Assembly: GCF_016432865.1 (NCBI RefSeq)
Contig: NC_067399.1
Span: 20,336,001-20,400,000, forward strand
Length of the DNA: 64,000 nucleotides
Direction of reading: 5' to 3'
Source: Antechinus flavipes
Lineage: Eukaryota
Both the position numbers and the translations under genes were made by a program. This document shows positions 1,978 through 32,149 of this stretch, one piece after another. The notes beneath the pieces are model-generated. The model ran no database searches, was not told the origin of the DNA, and saw nothing but the letters and a program-made list of their open reading frames with translations. Numbering within the stretch: position 1 is the stretch's first letter; each line of letters opens with the position of its first letter.

Positions 1978-2452
1978 NNNNNNNNNNNNNNNNNNNNNNN
2001 NNNNNNNNNNNNNNNNNNNNNNNNNNNNNNNNNNNNNNNNNNNNNNNNNNNNNNNNNNNNNNNNNNNNNNNNNNNNNNNNNNNNNNNNNNNNNNNNNNNN
2101 NNNNNNNNNNNNNNNNNNNNNNNNNNNNNNNNNNNNNNNNNNNNNNNNNNNNNNNNNNNNNNNNNNNNNNNNNNNNNNNNNNNNNNNNNNNNNNNNNNNN
2201 NNNNNNNNNNNNNNNNNNNNNNNNNNNNNNNNNNNNNNNNNNNNNNNNNNNNNNNNNNNNNNNNNNNNNNNNNNNNNNNNNNNNNNNNNNNNNNNNNNNN
2301 NNNNNNNNNNNNNNNNNNNNNNNNNNNNNNNNNNNNNNNNNNNNNNNNNNNNNNNNNNNNNNNNNNNNNNNNNNNNNNNNNNNNNNNNNNNNNNNNNNNN
2401 NNNNNNNNNNNNNNNNNNNNNNNNNNNNNNNNNNNNNNNNNNNNNNNNNNNN
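1978..2452. other. Assembly gap (475 N)
   Basis: Run of n; ORFs spanning it are artefacts. Confidence 1.
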
Positions 2453-5579: not shown

Positions 5580-6000
5580 ACACAGCACTAAGATTAAGAG
5601 GGCTTAGTCAAGGCTTCCTACAGAAGATGGGATATTAATTGCATTTCAAGGAAGCCAGGAAAGCCAATAGGCAGAGAGGAGGAGAAGAAAGAACATTGCA
5701 AATATGGGAGAGAAATGTCTTGAATCTGGAGATGAAATATCTTGTTCTAGGAAAGAACTAAGCCCAAGAACATGTATGTATGTTGGGAGAAAGATAAGAT
5801 GGGAGAAGGGAAGGTTATGGAAGGTTTGAAACATTTAACAGAGGGCTTTGTATTGGATCTTAGAGGTGATGGGGAAGCACTGGAGATTATTAGGGAGGGA
5901 TGTGTCATGGGAAGATGTGAACTTTGGATTTAGATTGCAGTGGGAAGAGACTAGGGGCAGGCAGACCCAGGGCAGGTCATCACAATATTTCTGGCTAAAT
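5580..6000 (-). mobile_element. L2 LINE remnant
   Basis: Purine-rich degenerate strings typical of antisense L2 3' region; recognised from memory. Confidence 0.5.
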
Positions 6001-6934
6001 CTAAGCATCTTCAAATTGGGATTGGGATTGGGAAGCCTAGCATCCAGAAAAAAGGAAGTGATGGGGTCAGGGCCCTCAGAATTTCTCCCATCCTGTCCAG
6101 GGTCTAGTGGGAGGTTCTGGAAACTATATTGTGAGAGAGATATTGGCCTTTAAAGCAGGCCAGATCCTAATATCACCTACTTTAATCATGCACTAGGCAC
6201 CCCAAGGGCTGGTGGATAGGCTCCCCAGTTGTTAATGAGAAGGAAATTGATTTTCAATTGCTAAAGTCCCACTGATGGGAAGCATTTGAAACTTCTAGTA
6301 AACATTAGTAAAGGATGTTCTAAAAGGGAGACACGTTCTAAAAGGAAAATACATGTGAAATACAGATGCTGAGGATTTTCACCAGAGTTCAGGAGATTTG
6401 GGGTTATTTTTTTTCAGTTTTCTGATGATCTTGGAAGATCTGCTGCTTGGTCCTGTCCATATTCACTTGTTTCTCACGTTTGAGAACAAAGATGTACTCG
6501 AAAAAGCTTTATGGAACTCTATTCTTTGCTGAAAATGTCAATGTAACCCCAAATCAACACCAAAAATGTGCTGGTGATACCGAGCCATTTCCAAGAGCCT
6601 GAAAAAAATCTTCATTTTTTTGTTCAGGAAATTCCAGTAATTAATAGGAAGATAGAGGGTTCAGTCAAGGATCCATTGACTGGAATTCTCCTTCTCCAAG
6701 GCCAAGGTCTCTGACGCTAAACTTTTCCCAGATTTCAGTTTTCTCGATCCAAGCCCTGCAGGAACCTCACTCATTCCTGTGTGTGTTCTCTCTTCCTCCA
6801 ATCTCCAGGCTTTGGGAACATGGCACCTGGCAAGCTTCTGGGCAGCAACCAGTCATGTGTTTCTACCTCATATTATGGGAAGAACAAAGGTTCCTCTTTG
6901 CTCCTGACCCCAAACTGAGGAAGACCTCGCCCTC

Positions 6935-7454: not shown

Positions 7455-9620
7455 ATGATGCTCTCTGCCACGATGTCCCCCAGCTTTTCAGGGCTGCTCC
7501 TCGCCTGCCTGCTGCTCCCCTGCCTGACACAAGGTGGGTCCCTCAGGCCTCCCTTTGACTGCCCACCTAGAACAGGGCCTAGAACAGGGGCTTGGACTTA
7601 GAAAAAGGGAAAGGGAAGGGGATGGGATGGAAGGAGGGTGCACAGTGAGACAGGGAAGAAGCAGTTGGGGGATTGTAGGGTTCAAAGCCTGATGTCCAGG
7701 GAACAGAAGCCCCAGCTGACCTCACCTGTAACTGGTCTCCTCCCTCCCCAGGCCATCAGGAGGCCCCTGAACCCCCCTCTGCCAGGAGCTCCTGCCCCCA
7801 GGGCTTTGGCTTCCATGGCTCCCACTGCTATGGAATATTGGGTCCTGAGACCTGGAACACTGCCGAGGTGGGTTGGAGAGAGGGTGCTGGGTCTATGTCC
7901 CTGTCTCCATATTCTTTGGGGCCAGCAATGTGGTCACAATGAGTCCTTAGTCCCTCATCTCTCACCCTGATCTTCCCCTGTCAGGGAACTCCAGAACTGG
8001 GGTCTCTTATTTTCTGTGTCCCTTAGAACTCAGCTTCCCACAATGGTGATCTTGTCATCCCATATTCAAATTATAACAGACCTCTCCCCTTGGGCTTTTA
8101 ACCTCTTCTCTTTTCCCCTGTTGACTTCTGTCCCCTGAGGCTCCCAGGAGCCTTCTCCTGCCTCCTTCGCTGCAGACCCCACACATTTACCCAGCCCCGC
8201 TCCCTCCTTCCACAGCTGCTGTGCCAGGGCTACCCCTCGGGCCACCTGGGCTCCCTGCTCAATGAGGCTGAGGCCACCTTCGTGGCCACCATGATCAAGG
8301 AGAACAAGGTTAAGGACCAAGTCTGGATCGGTCTGCACGACCCCAACAAGGTATGACCGAGGGCCCGTCCCTGTCCGAGTCCTGGAGAGAAGGAGAACAA
8401 CAGTGTGTGTGGAGCTGATGGGGAGGTGGTTCCTACCAATCTTGGTGGTTCAATTCCCTGAGAAAAGCACTAGAATTAGGGAAATAAATGAGCAGTACAG
8501 GGGGCAGGAGGACTCGTAGGATGAGGGAGAGAGTTCTGGACTGTGTCTAGTTTCAGAAGGTTTCTGCACCTCCACTAGCAGAATTTTTTTCTCCCCAATT
8601 TCATTCCAGTATCACTACCCATTCTTTTTCATTCAATGAGCAGGGTTTTTGTTCCCATATCTGTTAATTCTTAGCATCCCCAGGATGGGACTTTCCTATT
8701 ACCATCCTCATGGAGAAGAGTCACAATCAGGAAATCTTTCATCTGGGAAACAGTCCAAGGCAACCCAGGACCTAGAACTCCCCTAGAGGTTCAAGGCTCT
8801 CAGGGCAGGGGATGGTAGAGAAGGTGGGATAGATAGTAGACTCCACCTGGATCTCAGAAAATGGGATGAAGGTAGAAGCAAACTGGTGCTGAATAATGCC
8901 AGAAACAGCAGCCAGGATCACAGCAGCAGGAAAGATTTAGAAAACAGAAGCAGCCTGTTGGGAGATCTGGGCTAAATTAAGGTGCATGTGCAGTTCATCT
9001 GTTTATTAGGGGGTTAAAAGAGGTAGGTGGTTGGGGAGATGTCTCACCATTCCCTAACCGCCCCCTTCCCGATCCTCCCCCCCAGAATCGCAGATGGAAA
9101 TGGAGCAGCAACGCCCTATACCTCTACAAGGCCTGGGGGAAGGGCTTCCCAGCGAAGACTGATCCTAACTACTGTGTGAGCCTGACTCCTGAGTCTGGTG
9201 AGCTCCAACCCTTTCCCTCTGCCACCTGCACAGGAGCATCCTCTTCTCTTTGTGTTGTGTGGAAGCCTGGGGGAATGGGGCACCTCCTTTCTAGAATATG
9301 AGTGATTCTCTTGTCTATTATTTCCTTTCTCCCACCTCTCTTGTCTTCTTTCTTTGCCCTTTCCCAACCCTTTCATTTTTTTCTGTTCTCCCTTTTTACT
9401 TCTCTTCCTTTCTCTTCATTCTCCTTTGTTTTCAGCTCCTCATGGATAAACTTCAATGAGTAGAATATCTGGTACCAGGAAGTTTCAGTCACAGACTAGG
9501 GACCTAGCATCCTAACCCATCCCTCCATCTAACTTACACCATTTCTTTACAGAATTCCAGAACTGGAGAGATGAATCTTGTCAGAATGAGCACCTCTACT
9601 TGTGCAAGTTCAAAGCCTAG
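7455..9620 (+). CDS. REG/lithostathine-like (REG1-type) secreted C-type lectin A, 169 aa
   Basis: Coding exons 7455-7533, 7752-7867, 8216-8350, 9086-9197, 9553-9620; all GT-AG with consistent phases; 510 nt. Protein: MMLSATMSPSFSGLLLACLLLPCLTQGHQEAPEPPSARSSCPQGFGFHGSHCYGILGPETWNTAELLCQGYPSGHLGSLLNEAEATFVATMIKENKVKDQVWIGLHDPNKNRRWKWSSNALYLYKAWGKGFPAKTDPNYCVSLTPESEFQNWRDESCQNEHLYLCKFKA. Signal peptide, 6 canonical Cys, and WIGLHDPxKNRRW as in REG1; lacks the REG3 EPN insertion. Confidence 0.93.
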
Positions 9621-13129: not shown

Positions 13130-13841
13130 TAGGCCAAGAGAACAGGAGAACAGCATGCCCCTGATTCGATAGAAGTCTAAGGCACTATCTTTGTCCCCTT
13201 CTCTCCATGATCCTTAGGTGAGACAAGTCAGGGAGAACAGGATTTCTCTTGTTTCTTCCACAGAATCAAAGGTGATGCTCTCTGCTATGATGTCCCCCAG
13301 CTTCTCAGGACTGCTCCTCACATGCTTGCTGCTGCCAGACCTGACACAAGATGAGTCCTACAGAAAAACCCCGGAGATTTGGATATATTCACAGGGAACA
13401 GGAGGGGCCTGGACAGCAGCAAGGCAGGCACCATGGGACAGAGAAATGGTTGGGGGTTTGTAGGGTTCAAAGACTCTGCCTAGCTCTTATAGAGAGAATG
13501 TGCTAGGTGTGGAAGGGGGCTGGTGCTGAGGAATCCCAGCAGCAGCAGTAGGAATGGTAGCATGTGGAATTTTTAGAGAACAGAATAAATCTCTTGAGGG
13601 ACTGGGGCTTGAGAAAGATGCTCTTCATCTGTTTAGGGTGGGATGTAGGGGAGGTAGTGGAAGGTGTTTCACTATTTCACTATTTATTTATTCTCCAACC
13701 ATCTCCCTGCCTAATCCTCTGTACTCAGACCATAGGTAATGATGGAGTAGGAATGTCCTTTATCTCTGCTAAGCCTGAGAAAAGAGTTCCCCAAGCAGAA
13801 CCAGCTCAAACTATTGTGTGAATCTGATTCCTCATCAGTAG
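13130..13841 (+). pseudogene. REG-A-like unprocessed pseudogene
   Basis: Exon-2 homologue 13264-13350 (MLSAMMSPSFSGLLLTCLLLPDLTQ) with donor GT>AT; exons 3-4 deleted; exon-5 homologue 13729-13841 with in-frame TAA (13770) and TGA (13776); no TATA, exon 1 or exon 6 found. Confidence 0.88.
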
Positions 13842-15699: not shown

Positions 15700-16756
15700 C
15701 CTTGTCATCACATGCACTTTGACCCTTTATTATCTACTCTCACTTCATCTGCCTTGTTTTGGTTCCTCCCTTTCATTCCCTGTTCATATCTGTTTCCCCC
15801 TCTAGTTTATTCTTTAAAGTATCTGTCACTTCCTGGTCATATATACCATCCTACAGTCCTTTAACCCAGATAAACTGGAGTTGAAGAGATCACTCCATGT
15901 CATTCAGGCCATTCCTTATGCTGGGATAGGGAATGAGCCATTTTAACTTTGAAGAGAAAGCTGCTAGGAGGGAAGGTTGTCAGCAAAAGCTATCCTAGAA
16001 AATGTATGACAGGATGTGTCTCTGGTTCCTGTGCCATTAAGCTTTTTCCCAACAGTGTCCAGGAAGAGGAAGGGCACAAAAGAGGGATTGTTATCAATTC
16101 TTAAAGCAAAAAGAAGAAAAATAAGAAAGATCTTTGTTCTTCCCAATTGTAAACTTCCTTTCTCTGGTCCCATCTCTAAATTAGGGATATCTTTTGCCCT
16201 AATCCTATGCTCCCTCCCTTCAGATTCAGAGACAATGCTGCCCTGGATGATGTCCCCAGACTTCTTAGGCCCTCTCTTCACTTCCCTGCTGGTCCTAAGC
16301 CAAAATTCAGTGGTTGAGAATTAAGCAACTACAATGTGCCAAGTACTGAGGCAACAGGTGCGTCCCTCCCTCCAGGGTCTTCCCACCACCTTCAGCACCA
16401 TGTTTGAGGACAGCTCTCAGAGTGATGAGAAACCTAGAGAGAAAAGAAAAGGGGGAATGGGAAGGAGTTGGATCCAAGAAGAGGGAAAACAGAGGCTAAA
16501 TCTAGGTCTTTCTTATCCCTACTCATCCTGTCTCCCCAAAGCTTCCCAGGGTTGGTCTCTGACCTCCTTCCTCCTCTCCATTGCTAATAACTAAAGCCTT
16601 CTCTACTTCTCCCTTATAACTTAATTGTCAGAATCTGCCATGGGGCCACCTAGCATCCCTGCCAAATGAAGCTGAAGCTTCCTTTGTGGCCCCCATAATT
16701 GCTGAGAATGTGGCAGCTGGGGCTCCATCTGGATAGGCCTTCACAATTTCCTGAAG
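15700..16756 (+). pseudogene. REG-B-like unprocessed pseudogene
   Basis: TATA>TTTAAA (15813); exon-1 donor GT>AT (15870); exon-2 homologue ATG 16235-16310 (MLPWMMSPDFLGPLFTSLLVLSQNS) with no in-phase donor; exon 3 deleted; exon-4 homologue 16620-16756 (CQNLPWGHLASLPNEAEASFVAP...IWIGLH) with acceptor AG>AA and a -1 frameshift. Confidence 0.85.
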
Positions 16757-16927: not shown

Positions 16928-17220
16928 NNNNNNNNNNNNNNNNNNNNNNNNNNNNNNNNNNNNNNNNNNNNNNNNNNNNNNNNNNNNNNNNNNNNNNNNN
17001 NNNNNNNNNNNNNNNNNNNNNNNNNNNNNNNNNNNNNNNNNNNNNNNNNNNNNNNNNNNGNNNNNNNNNNNNNNNNNNNNNNNNNNNNNNNNNNNNNNNN
17101 NNNNNNNNNNNNNNNNNNNNNNNNNNNNNNNNNNNNNNNNNNNNNNNNNNNNNNNNNNNNNNNNNNNNNNNNNNNNNNNNNNNNNNNNNNNNNNNNNNNN
17201 NNNNNNNNNNNNNNNNNNNN
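16928..17220. other. Assembly gap (N run with a single g at 17060)
   Basis: Run of n directly 3' of the REG-B-like pseudogene. Confidence 1.
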
Positions 17221-19099: not shown

Positions 19100-20030
19100 T
19101 CATTCATTCCTTTGTTTTTTTTTTTAACATTATTGTCTTTTTAAACTTTGCATCTCAAATTCTCTCTCTCCCTCCCACCCACTGAGAAGGCAAGTAATAT
19201 GTTAATTATACATGTGGAATCATGAAAAGCATATTTGGATATTAGCCATATTTCCAAAAAAAAGCAAGAAAGATAAAAAATTTTAAATTATACTTCAATT
19301 TGCATTAAGAACATTTTTTCATTGTGGGAATCGACTTAAATCAATGAATTTATCAGAATAGCTAAGTCCAAGGTCCTTTTCAATGCTGAGAGCAGTGATA
19401 TATCTTTTTCAGAAGATAGTGGCCCTAGAGCCGTGGAAATGAAAGATTCTCCGTAAGTGTGCCATGATAACGCATCAATCAATAAATAAATGTTAAGCTC
19501 CTAATATTGCCAGCTAAGTGCTAGAGATACAAAAAGAAGCAAAAAAATAGTTCTTGCCCTAAGGAGCCTACAATTGAACAGCATATTCTCTCTGTTTGCC
19601 CTTCCACATGGGTATCCTATCCCCTATATTTGAGAAATAAAGTCTTTATCAGAGAAACTTGCTTTAAAATTTTTTTAATATTACTTCATTGGCTATGGTA
19701 ACATTTACTATCATGTAACTTCCCTAGTTATCTCTTTCAATCAGGTCTACTTTTGTTTTTTAGTTTGTCTGAGATCATGATTGCTAATCCTATCCTTTTT
19801 TTTTTTTTTAGTTTTTTTAGTTGAAACATATGAAATTCTGCTCCAGCCTTTTATTCTAACTCTGTCTCAAATAGTCTCCTGTAAACAATACATTGTCAGA
19901 TTCTGGTTTCTAACCCATTCTGCTGTCCATTTCCATTTTAAGGTAAGTTCATTCCATTCAGAGTCACAGTTATGATTACTAGTTGTATTTCCCTCCATTC
20001 CATTATCTTCTGTTTCTTCTCTGAAACAAA
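19100..20030 (-). mobile_element. Antisense L1 fragments (3'UTR 19100-19370; ORF2 piece 19620-20030) with MIR/L2 bits
   Basis: Reverse-complement L1 3'UTR and endonuclease-region strings. Confidence 0.6.
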
Positions 20031-20732
20031 AACATCTTTCTCATATACAGACCCTTAGACAGGCTATGGCAGTTTCAAGGCAACCACTCAAAATCATAGC
20101 TGAGTCCGTGTCAAACCCAGTGGGTTTTCCCTTACTAGTCAGCCAGTAGATGCACAGTGCAACGTGAAGGGGACTTAATGGAATAACAAATAATCACAGA
20201 AGCTACAGAATACGTACTGTACAAACTTGGGGCCCGCTCTCTCACAAATACATGTGCTGACGGGAAAAATGGGCTTGCTTTGGGTTCATAGGGGGTGGGA
20301 GGGGACATGCATAGGGAACATGTGAACCCAGGGAAGAAATCTGGAGGAAGACCCAAGTACAGAACGCCATGTCTAAGGTACAAATGTAAGAGACCGGGCA
20401 CCTGGGGAAGGGCAAATGCAGAGAATGCGTACTGCTGTTCGATTATAACTCCCTGGGGCAAGAACTGTTTTTGCATCTTCAGCACTTAGTGCAGCACATG
20501 GCACATACTGGGAGCTTAATGTTTATTTATTGATTGATGTGTTGCCATGACACATTTATGGAGAACCTCCCATTTCCACTGCTCCAGGGCCACTAGTGCC
20601 ATTGGCCACTGGCCAATATCTTCTGATAAAGATATCTCACCACTCTCAGCATTGAAAAGAATCTGGGAAAAGATCTATTGTTTCTATTTGACATGGCGGA
20701 TGTCTAAACTCTAATTCTCCTTACGCCTTCCC

Positions 20733-27720: not shown

Positions 27721-28099
27721 GTAAGTGGAGGATCTGAAGAACAAGGATGACCTGGGATTCCAGAGACTCTGCTTCCTCTGAATGGAGGAGCATAAATCTT
27801 GGGGTGGGGGGTGCTGCCTTTGGGAGAAGGGCTGGCAGATGGTCATCCTGAAAGTGGGATGGAGTGCTACGCCAGGCAACCATCAGCTTGTCTGCTATTC
27901 CCAGAGGCCCCAGTTTCCCATAGATCTGAGGAAGGGGGGGAGATGTCACAAGAATCTGCCCCCAGGTCTGGAGGGCGGAAGAAAGCGAGCACAGAAGATC
28001 TTTTGTCTCCCCTTTCCCGATCCCATCTCTGAGATCTGCTCTGGGTCAAGGTGTTCTGTACCTTAGAGTCTGGGCTTTCTGTCCCTTCAGACTGAGACC

Positions 28100-30694
28100 A
28101 TGCTGCCCCAGATAATGGCCCCCAGTTTCTCCAAGCTGCTCCTGGTCTGCCTGCTGCTCGTAGGCCTGGAATGTGGTGAGTGCTTCTTGTCCTTCCTCCC
28201 TGACTTGGGATGTGCTTGGGGACAGCCTCATGGTTATGTAGAGAGAGGGAGAACAGACTCATGGGGAAAAAGGAAGAAGGGGAAGAAGAAGCAAGGAGGA
28301 GAGGGACATTCAGGAATCCCAGAGGGCAGTAGCTCCAGATCTCTGCTCTCTAGTCCCTTCTCATCCCTCTTTCAGGTGAGACTGCCTCTACTGCTGCTGC
28401 TGCTGGTGCTGCTGCTGCCTCTTTTCGGCGGGCCTGTCCTGAAGGGTCCAAAGCATTTGGTTCTTACTGCTATGGCTTGTTCAGTATGTTAGAGACCTGG
28501 GATGCTGCAGAGGTTGGTTGGGGAAGGTTCCCAAGCAGGGATGGGGATATCCGTTTTTTCTCTTTTATCACAGTGCCCCTTGAGTCTTAGTCATGGACAT
28601 TTAACCCTTCCTCTGTCTCTAGGAAGGTCCCACACTCTCCTCTAGTTCCCTGAAGATGTGATCTCTGTCTTGTCTCCTATTCTTCACCTTATATGAGGAA
28701 AACTCTCTTCTCTCTTCCCCTAAGGTGAACTGCCAGAGCCAGACTTCAGGCCATCTGGTTTCCCTGATGAATGAGGCAGAAGCTTCCTTTGTGGCCTCTC
28801 TAGTGGCTGAGAGCGGAGGCAGCCGGTGTGGCATCTGGATTGGTCTCTATGACCCTAACAAGGTTTGTCCTGCAGACTCTGCTAGTCCTTTTGCCTGCCC
28901 AGATTATTAGAGAAGGGGATGGGGGCCTGCTCAGAAAACATCATCCTCTTCTCCTTTGGAGCTTTAGGAAAAGGGAATTGGAAGGAGGTGAGGGGGCTAA
29001 GGAAGACCATTTCCAGTGGTATCTAGCTTTTATGACTCCATCCAGGTGTCTCTAGTCAGAATCAAGCTATCCAAACTCAATTTATTTCACACACATGCCC
29101 CATACCTCATTCAAACTCCTATTTCTTCTCATCATGGCTATTCACATTATTGGAGGTCATGGTCTCCATCCTAATGGAAATAAAACATAAAATCACCTCA
29201 CTTTTTTTTTAGAGAACCAAACAAATGATAGATAAGGGAGAAATGTTCATAGTTGGTAAAGAAGAACATGTTAACCCCTTAGAAACATATTAATACCTCA
29301 TCATCTGTTATATTTTCTAAGCTATAGGGAAGAGATTTGAGGCTAGTAATGTAATATTTTCTCTGCTGATATAAAGGATAAGGAGTTGATTTCTCCCCCT
29401 TCTCCAGATCATAGATTATAATTCCAGATGATGAGGAGCTAATGTGTTGCTGAGCAGTTAACACCCTCTCTTTCTCACTGTGACTTGAGAGAGTAATATC
29501 TGAAACACTAGACAGAGGCTAGCCTAAGACTCCATTGGCTGACCAGGACTGTCTGGGCTGTAGATGATCAGAGTGGGGACCCATCAGTATGGGGGAAGTT
29601 AGGGAAGGCTTCCTAGAGGAGATGGGCTTTTTATTAGATCCTGCAGAGAATTTGAAAGCTCTTCTAAGACCAGTTAGTCCAGTCTTTGCACCAAATAGAA
29701 TTACTTCCCCCCATATTAAATTCAAGTGTACCAAGTCTTCTAGAAAAGACAAGGAGAGAGGAAGGAAAACAAAAGTATCTCCCCTCAATATGAGTGAAGT
29801 GGATACTTCTAATCCCCAATGTGTTAATTAGCAAATACAGAGAGTTAGGGTCAAGGGGAGGCATTTGTGATACAAGGAATTTTGATGGAGAAAGGGAACC
29901 GATCATCTCCAACATGAGCCATTAGGATTTAAACAAGTCTAATTGTCAGGAAGCCTTTTTTACATCAAGATTAAATTCTCTTTGCAATGTACCCCCATTG
30001 CTTCAAACTTTGATCAAGAGCAACAAGGCTAATCTGACTTCCATATTATACGTCAGGTCCTTGTATCTAGGATTTTAAGGACTAGCTGATTGGATTATTT
30101 GAAATTCTAAGAGGGAGATGGGATCTGGAAACACTGAGTGGGAAAACAAATGTGGGGAATTTTGAGGAGAGTGAGGAAAGATTGTGTATGTTTGGAGGGG
30201 TTCTCTAATCACTGCCTTCCCCCTACAGACCCGGCGTTGGAAATGGAGCAGCAATGCCCTGTTCACCTACCAGGCCTGGGCTACAAAAGCCCCAAGCAAT
30301 ACCAGTCCTGGATACTGTGCGACCTTGACACCAGAAACAGGTGAGACAAAAAAAATTACAAAGAAACTCTGTGTATTTGCTAACTAACACATTGGGGATT
30401 AGAAGTATCCACTTCACCCATATTAAGGGGAGATACTTTTGTTTCCCTTCCTTTCTTCTCCTTGTTTCTAGTAACCACAAACCTCTAAGCAGCTTTAAGT
30501 TTGCTAGTACTTTGGGGGTCTGGGAATGCTTTGAATCCCAGGGCTGGGGGTTAAGATTACTAGGCCGTGGAACCACAAATTCCAGTATACCTGCTTCTCA
30601 GCATGATGAATCATGTCTTTTCTTAGGATTCAAAAACTGGAAAGATCAACTATGTAGCAACAAAAACTTCTACATCTGCAAGTTCAAATCCTAA
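28100..30694 (+). CDS. REG/lithostathine-like secreted C-type lectin B, 176 aa
   Basis: Coding exons 28100-28175, 28376-28512, 28725-28862, 30229-30340, 30627-30694; all GT-AG; 531 nt. Protein: MLPQIMAPSFSKLLLVCLLLVGLECGETASTAAAAGAAAASFRRACPEGSKAFGSYCYGLFSMLETWDAAEVNCQSQTSGHLVSLMNEAEASFVASLVAESGGSRCGIWIGLYDPNKTRRWKWSSNALFTYQAWATKAPSNTSPGYCATLTPETGFKNWKDQLCSNKNFYICKFKS. AATAAA at 30903-30908. Confidence 0.93.
29740..30471. repeat. Inverted repeat (arms 29740-29846 and 30365-30471) bracketing REG-B exon 5
   Basis: Arms are reverse complements with a perfect 33-bp block taacacattggggattagaagtatccacttcac; the ORF track echoes it as LGIRSIHFTHI on both strands. Confidence 0.92.
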
Positions 30695-30972
30695 AGATTA
30701 CAAGACAGGGAAAGGAGTTGGAATTCTGCATTCGTGGGATCAAACCTTGACCTCTGAGGAATCTGGCTCTAGGCTCTCTGTCCTAATATGTATCTTCCTT
30801 TTGTAATTGCCCTTCAGCCCCTTCCCTTTCCTATAGGGAATATCTCCTTCCTCCATTTACATTTCTTTGAGGGCTGCCTGGTATAAAACACCAGGCAACC
30901 AGAATAAACCATTATCTTTTCTAAGCTTCTTTGTCTGGTATCATATTTGTTTGAAGACTGATTATGGGTTAT

Positions 30973-31011
<39 letters not shown>

Positions 31012-31260
31012 CAGAAGATGGAGATCTCATGATATGTAGGAAGGGGTACCTTTTCCATTTTCCTCCCAGAAACAATATTCATTCACTCACTAGATATTTG
31101 TTGAGCATTTAATTTATATCTGACATGGATAAATAAATAATAATAAATAAATAAAATGACATGGTCTCCTGGAGACCAAAGGGAACACCTCCCCAATACT
31201 GTGGCTTAGTAAATTGATTTTGTGAACCCAAGCATAAGAATTTATACTTATCCCTATTAA

Positions 31261-32136
31261 TTCTCAGAGTCATTCCAGAGACTTAGTTGGTTAACAGCAA
31301 AGATCACAATTTAGTTTGTCTGGCATAGGACTCCTTTTGTCCCTACTCTTTTATCTTGAATTTACTCTCAAAGTAAGTTACTTACACCTTATCCCTTAGA
31401 GGGACAATTAACACTCAGGTTTCTAGCTACTATTGTAGTTCGCAAAGGTGCTTCCCATCAATATTCATCCAGGTAGATATAAGTTTTTATTGATTCTTTT
31501 TCAAGAGATGGGATTATTTAAATATTCACCTTCCTGTTCTGTTAATCTGAGCAGTAAATATTCATCTATTTCCTGTAGATTGTCAGATTTATTGGCGTAT
31601 GATTGGGCAAAATAGTACCTAATACTTGCTTTAATTTCATCTTAACTGGTGATGAAAAAATGAAGAATGAATTCAATTCCTTTTTATTTCCATTTTACTT
31701 TCTCCAGAGGTCTATCATATCCAAGATTTCTAAGATAAATAAAATTATCTCCTTAAGTTCTTTCTTGTTAGTTCTGAGAGGAAACTTGAGATCCCTTACT
31801 ATGATAGTTTTATTATATTTCCTTCTGTAGCTCATTTACAGACAGAGAGAGAAAGAGAAAGATAGAGAAAGAGAGACAGAGACAGAGAGCCACAGAGATA
31901 GATAGAGATAATGATGGCCCAACTAAATCTTCAAACAAAAATGATACACCTTTACGAACTACAATAGTAGCTAGAAACCTGAGTGTTAATTGTCCCTCTA
32001 AGGGATAAGTTGTAAGTAAGTTACTTTGAGAGTAAATTCAAGATAAAAGAGTAGGGACAAAAGGAGTCCTATGCCAGACAAACTAAATTGTGGTCTTTGC
32101 TGTTAACCAACTAAGTCTCTGGAATGACTCTGAGAA
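31261..32136. repeat. Near-perfect 190-bp inverted repeat (arms 31261-31450 and 31947-32136) with an L1-containing spacer
   Basis: Manual reverse-complement alignment gives 4 mismatches in 190 bp; spacer is 496 bp. Confidence 0.95.
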
Positions 32137-32149
32137 ATATCCTAGCTGT

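Follow-up and report, generated by a model that had tools for sequence, protein, structure and literature searches.

Origin and decay of an intronic inverted repeat around exon 5 of a REG/lithostathine gene in dasyurid marsupials

In the genome of Antechinus flavipes (assembly GCF_016432865.1, contig NC_067399.1, positions 20,336,001 to 20,400,000 of the forward strand; these 64,000 nucleotides (nt) are called the window, and positions are counted from its first letter), exon 5 of REG-B, a gene of the REG/lithostathine kind, lies between two intron segments that are reverse complements of each other. The origin of this pair and the pattern of its subsequent decay are visible in comparison with related marsupials. 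Taken together, the arms probably represent a single local inverted duplication of intron 5 that has since decayed more or less neutrally, with any effects on splicing being incidental and not the output of a selected switch. The segments concerned are the following.

29740-29846, + strand: left arm, in intron 4; derived reverse-complement copy of an intron-5 segment
29847-29885, + strand: relic extension of the duplicated segment, 39 nt; its intron-5 partner was deleted in the dasyurid stem and it is now unpaired
30365-30471, + strand: right arm, in intron 5; ancestral source of the duplication, with its Dromiciops counterpart at about 5921-6050 of locus L005

An earlier note on this DNA had described a 107-bp intronic inverted repeat bracketing exon 5, and its account of the arms is confirmed. 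A repeat finder returns two arms of 107 nt each that are 90% complementary and 518 nt apart, and the right arm begins 24 nt past the exon-5 donor. Ungapped comparison of the arms yields 11 mismatches, six of which fall into the purine-rich outer 27 nt, where most are explained by a 3-nt insertion or deletion (indel). The other five are spread over the remaining 80 nt, which also contain a perfect block of 33 bp; if these core mismatches are read as RNA, four, as the note had it, are A.C or C.A oppositions, and one is G.G. Moreover, the arms are unique in their surroundings. A 34-nt core pattern (up to three mismatches allowed) is found at the two arms alone in the window and gave 0 matches in shuffled windows, and neither blastn at word size 7 nor nhmmer with an arm profile detected a further clear copy within the 64 kb. 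The sole extra match of the arm profile is marginal (2474-2573, nhmmer E 0.03). This stretch, on the minus strand and adjoining the first of the two runs of N in the window (1978-2452 and 16928-17220), shares TTAGCAAATACA and a purine-rich stretch with the profile, has no REG exon nearby and is either a chance match or a very old relative. The paralogue REG-A (exon 5 near 9086-9197) is without such arms, as had been said. The exons of REG-A and REG-B are only 65-70% alike, and their introns do not align.

Is the inverted pair specific to Antechinus? Orthologous loci were compared from Sminthopsis (dunnart; L001), from two independent Sarcophilus (devil) assemblies that are identical over the region (L002 and L003) and from Dromiciops (L005), together with a devil transcript contig from Logan (L004). 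Both arms are present and collinear in Sminthopsis and in both Sarcophilus assemblies, and the alignment is collinear through the whole gene (identity over REG-B of 89.5% between window and devil and about 87% between window and dunnart). Conservation among dasyurids, which the earlier note had proposed to look at, therefore extends over three genera, and the presence of the pair in four assemblies of these genera led us to reject an assembly artefact.

The direction of copying can be read from Dromiciops, the only source of outgroup DNA for origin and polarity. Intron 5 of Dromiciops is collinear with that of Antechinus, right arm included (L005 ~5921-6050), whereas its intron 4 has, opposite Antechinus 29735-29937, some 60 unrelated nt and no left arm. 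Since Dromiciops has the right-arm sequence but no left arm, the right arm is the ancestral sequence from which the left arm was copied. Local alignment further revealed that the copy is longer than the present duplex, as about 145 nt of Antechinus (29741-29885) match the reverse complement of L005 5921-6050. The partner of 29847-29885 is kept in Dromiciops intron 5 and lost from intron 5 of all three dasyurids; as the left copy retains these 39 nt, it was made from the local intron 5 before the deletion. The event predates crown dasyurids, because Sarcophilus and Sminthopsis carry both arms, and it occurred shortly before their radiation, because just two substitutions between left and right arm (29766 and 29793) are fixed in all three. 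Gene conversion between the arms was considered and rejected, as no species-specific state is common to both.

These observations suggest the following course of events. In the dasyurid stem, once Dromiciops had branched off, a segment of intron 5 of about 145 nt, starting a few tens of bases past the exon-5 donor, was copied in reverse complement into intron 4, some 380 nt upstream of exon 5, creating a hairpin of about 145 bp around the exon. The likeliest cause would be fold-back repair or a template switch during replication. Before the radiation, the inner part of the right-hand partner was then lost by a deletion of some 40-50 nt, and the pair was inherited by Antechinus, Sarcophilus and Sminthopsis, each adding its own substitutions and deletions. 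Template switching is known to yield reverse-complement repeats (PMC8794818, PMC5453318), and REG-B resembles such template-switch or fold-back mutations in that a nearby sequence of the same chromosome was copied in reverse complement, in one lineage, giving a perfect stem in one step. In contrast, the events described in these studies mostly involve tens of bases at close distance, whereas the REG-B copy comprises about 145 nt and lies some 500-600 bp away, across an exon.

Are the arms able to pair in the transcript? The energy of an arm-arm RNA duplex was calculated to be -155.7 kcal/mol, as compared to -32 +/- 5 kcal/mol for shuffled arms. In the minimum-energy fold of 29690-30520 (831 nt), a prediction of the kind that the earlier note had suggested, the arms are paired and exon 5 lies in the loop (z = -13). 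The corresponding duplex energies are -120 kcal/mol in devil and -124 kcal/mol in dunnart. On these models the arms could pair in REG-B pre-mRNA, also in vivo. The long helices left in all three genera are what slow neutral decay at about 6% divergence would be expected to leave behind.

If the pairing itself were under selection, it should have left traces in the way the arms changed. All arm differences were mapped on the three-species tree with Dromiciops as outgroup. About 19 arm substitutions could be placed, each on one lineage and in one arm, and not a single compensatory change was found in about 100 pair columns, although with three species the power of this comparison is limited. As to the core mismatches of Antechinus, 29827 is a G-to-A change in the Antechinus left arm, 30371 is a C-to-G change in the Antechinus right arm, 29786 is a T-to-C change common to Antechinus and devil, and the remaining two predate the radiation. 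Transitions over the tree had 5 G.U and 7 A.C outcomes, as neutrality predicts. The A.C mismatches were thus rejected as a signature of editing or selection, being ordinary independent transitions in single lineages. In addition, the arms are broken by indels: the devil right arm has a 23-nt deletion (present in both assemblies), 8 nt are missing from the left and 4 nt from the right arm of the dunnart, and Antechinus and devil show indels of 3 and 2 nt. With 5 events in 214 nt of arms versus 21 in 1438 nt of other intron, the arms gather indels no more slowly than the remaining intron sequence. Substitutions are distributed as follows.

Intron background: 0.129 substitutions per site (reference rate)
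Right arm: 10/80 columns, at background
Left arm: 6/97 columns, about 2 standard deviations below the mean; a count this low is reached in only 0.8% of sliding windows
Unpaired left extension, 29847-29885: 17/78 columns, fast
Exon 5: 7/112 columns, for comparison

Pairing thus shows no sign of selection: compensatory change, a slow rate in both arms and resistance to indels are all lacking.

Several points weigh against a neutrally decaying duplication. A duplex of -120 to -156 kcal/mol persists in all three genera. No 100-nt intron stretch of the gene is more conserved than the left arm, which has the lowest count among the windows tested, and a slow left arm beside a fast unpaired extension could hint at a constraint on the paired part; this hint is weak and one-sided, unlike what would be expected for selection on the duplex. 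Moreover, divergence allows the junctions to be placed to within about 10 nt at best, which is too coarse to show microhomology. At the outer junction, the ancestral intron 4 (Dromiciops TTTTAGAAGAC) and the copy both resemble Antechinus TAGAAAAGAC. Finally, with one outgroup for which DNA was available, loss of the left arm in Dromiciops is excluded solely by the argument from the direction of copying.

What would the duplex do to REG-B transcripts? The gene model in this part of the window, with splice sites read from the DNA, is as follows.

28725-28862, + strand: exon 4, 46 codons, phase 0 at both ends
28863-30228, + strand: intron 4, 1366 nt
30229-30340, + strand: exon 5, 112 nt (37 codons plus 1 nt), encoding the part TRRWKWSS...PGYCATLTPET of the C-type lectin domain
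30341-30626, + strand: intron 5, 286 nt
30627-30694, + strand: coding part of exon 6, the last exon, with the normal stop TAA at 30692-30694
30903-30908, + strand: polyadenylation signal AATAAA, in the last exon downstream of the stop

Exon 5 is bounded by the acceptor ...ccccctacag| and the donor CAG|gtgaga, both consensus-like and conserved as far as Dromiciops. Skipping of the 112-nt exon shifts the frame, as the earlier note had stated, and the new frame ends after 59 codons at a TAA (30804-30806) that belongs to the last exon and precedes the AATAAA. Because this new stop sits in the last exon, nonsense-mediated decay (NMD), which the note had offered as an outcome, is not expected under the usual exon-junction rule. 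Judged from the sequence, the product would be a truncated lectin without the second half of its domain and is probably non-functional. It is known that inverted intronic repeats flanking an exon promote its loop-out skipping (PMC13019027, PMC2533698) and that they promote circularisation, repeats of 30-40 nt being sufficient for back-splicing (PMC4201285). However, exons of 400 nt or less were circularised poorly in the same study (PMC4201285), which disfavours a circle of the lone 112-nt exon 5 and with it the circularisation that had been put forward as an alternative to skipping. From these considerations some effect of the duplex on REG-B pre-mRNA is physically plausible: the remaining duplex of about 100 bp may loop out exon 5, and low-level skipping and promiscuous adenosine-to-inosine (A-to-I) editing of the arms would be expected, both of them probably incidental and not parts of a selected regulatory switch. 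In the devil transcript contig exons 4, 5 and 6 are spliced canonically, which as one contig is a weak negative for skipping, and no exon-5-less product was seen among the proteins related to the Sminthopsis orthologue described below, again a weak negative.

A separate observation concerns the outer end of the right arm. In Antechinus only, 30440-30471 forms a long polypyrimidine tract that ends in CTAG and looks like a 3' splice site; an AG is missing at this place from devil, dunnart and Dromiciops. Its use after exon 5 would lead to a stop within 6 codons.

Could the duplex nevertheless be a selected, gene-specific RNA switch that controls REG-B output by skipping of exon 5 as an off-switch, by circularisation or by ADAR editing, as the earlier note had proposed? 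The inverted pair was kept with long helices in three dasyurid genera, the substitution count of the left arm is unusually low, both arms are close to exon 5 (the right one 24 nt from the donor) and the mechanism is well precedented (PMC13019027, PMC2533698, PMC4201285). On the other hand, compensatory changes are lacking, the right arm changes as fast as neutral intron, every lineage has suffered arm-breaking deletions, the 23 nt of the devil included, the inner third of the original duplex was lost early and transitions are not biased towards G.U. Moreover, the stop of the skip product in the last exon leaves no NMD, short exons circularise poorly (PMC4201285), and canonical splicing alone is found in the one transcript contig. 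While the repeat is indeed specific to REG-B, its being a switch is unlikely. It could also be imagined that a duplication that did not involve a transposon, was fixed before the radiation and still forms a duplex of about 100 bp came to act as a lineage-specific structural splicing element with the conserved left arm as the selected partner. A regulated share of the pre-mRNA would then give rise to the exon-5-less, frameshifted product that escapes NMD or to a heavily edited nuclear double-stranded RNA. This is rather improbable.

Alternatively, the left arm may have been conserved for a reason that has nothing to do with pairing, such as a regulatory or protein-binding function within the intron, in which case the complementarity would be a historical trace. 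The asymmetry of conservation (6/97 in the left versus 10/80 columns in the right arm) would fit such a constraint. However, the deviation amounts to about 2 standard deviations only, among about 14 independent windows, and the left arm has its own deletions of 3, 2 and 8 nt, which makes this explanation very doubtful. Two independent, opposed insertions of a dispersed repeat, that is a short interspersed element (SINE) or a miniature inverted-repeat transposable element (MITE), would be the usual source of such structures, and the marginal third match at 2474-2573 could be counted in their favor, but the collinearity of the right arm with Dromiciops as ordinary ancestral intron and the 39 nt of adjoining unique intron-5 sequence in the left copy largely refute them, and the arms show no other clear copy in 64 kb (at least 5 copies of a true SINE-like family are present in the window) and no poly-A tail, target-site duplication or terminal inverted repeat, so that this origin is exceedingly improbable. 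The arms are thus not a SINE, in line with the earlier note, which had not recognised them as a common one.

As a single local inverted duplication, the REG-B pair can be placed among known systems. It belongs to the exon-flanking intronic complementary pairs, a known kind, and its well-resolved non-transposon origin is the main interest. Like inverted intronic Alu or SINE pairs, it consists of reverse-complementary intron segments on both sides of an exon, for which folding predicts a long stable stem that leaves the exon in its loop (PMC13019027, PMC2533698, PMC4201285). Alu-driven skipping favours weak acceptors (PMC13019027), whereas the splice sites of exon 5 are consensus-like, and REG-B is known here from its sequence, with skipping being predicted. 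Unlike the Alu and SINE pairs, the REG-B arms arose by local inverted duplication of unique intron sequence and are not transposable elements, and with about 100 bp they are shorter than Alus.

A non-transposon precedent is the circular RNA of mouse Sry, in which a single exon of more than 1 kb lies between inverted duplications of many kb and for which circularisation has been demonstrated. Common to both genes are flanking inverted repeats of non-transposon, duplicative origin around a single exon; in contrast to Sry, the exon of REG-B has 112 nt, and any circle would be hypothetical. The significance of REG-B lies in being a clean and dated case in which one mutational event turned unique sequence into a long intronic hairpin enclosing an exon, no transposon being involved, and in which the source, the copy, the state of the outgroup and the decay that followed can all be seen. 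Such cases show that genomes lacking Alu-like repeats can also acquire loop-out or circular-RNA architectures, and they provide a baseline for the decay of an unselected stem. Should skipping prove to be real, this secretory gene with its high expression would become a small and tractable marsupial model for splicing driven by structure. The biology of REG proteins is unchanged by the finding as it stands.

The identity of REG-B was established by searching with exon 4 alone as query and then with database proteins. Exon 4 shares 91% identity with residues 72-117 of a lithostathine-1-alpha-like protein of Sminthopsis crassicaudata (P0002), the best full-length match, which carries PF00059 and matches human lithostathine 1LIT with E = 1e-48. 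A search with this protein returned orthologues of the same name in Sarcophilus, Vombatus, Dromiciops, Trichosurus, Macrotis, Gracilinanus and Monodelphis. Furthermore, exon 4 aligns with positions 510-649 of the devil transcript contig, and the exons of REG-B map collinearly on the orthologue loci. By sequence similarity REG-B is a REG/lithostathine gene that encodes a secreted protein with a single C-type lectin domain, closest to lithostathine/REG1. Upstream in the gene, positions 4-388 of the devil contig correspond to window 27801-28180 and run unspliced through the modelled intron 1 into exon 2, which indicates an alternative start site or a retained intron 1. Intron 4 of Sminthopsis contains a GA-rich microsatellite expansion of about 250 nt (L001 5371-5630, opposite window position ~29468) that is found in the dunnart only; a GA-rich tract resembling it lies at 31838-31914 of the window. 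Between REG-A and REG-B, REG-like exon fragments are scattered at 13287-13359, 13742-13835, 15705-15880 and 16620-16727; as the exon-5-like piece has in-frame stops, they probably represent a decayed third REG copy.

A second inverted pair is found downstream of the REG-B polyadenylation site, with arms of 193 nt (31258-31450 and 31947-32139) that are 97% complementary. The devil has this sequence in one copy only (L002 7779-7130), to which Antechinus 31258-31928 runs in the opposite direction; 31258-32139 is therefore an inversion specific to one lineage and bordered by an inverted duplication. The Sminthopsis locus has no match to this second pair. The region shows a second, younger event of similar flavour, which suggests that fold-back rearrangements recur at the locus. 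A further inverted pair, at 19367-19507 and 20505-20668 and thus about 1 kb apart, is made up of a 91-nt piece (84%) and a 58-nt piece (86%).

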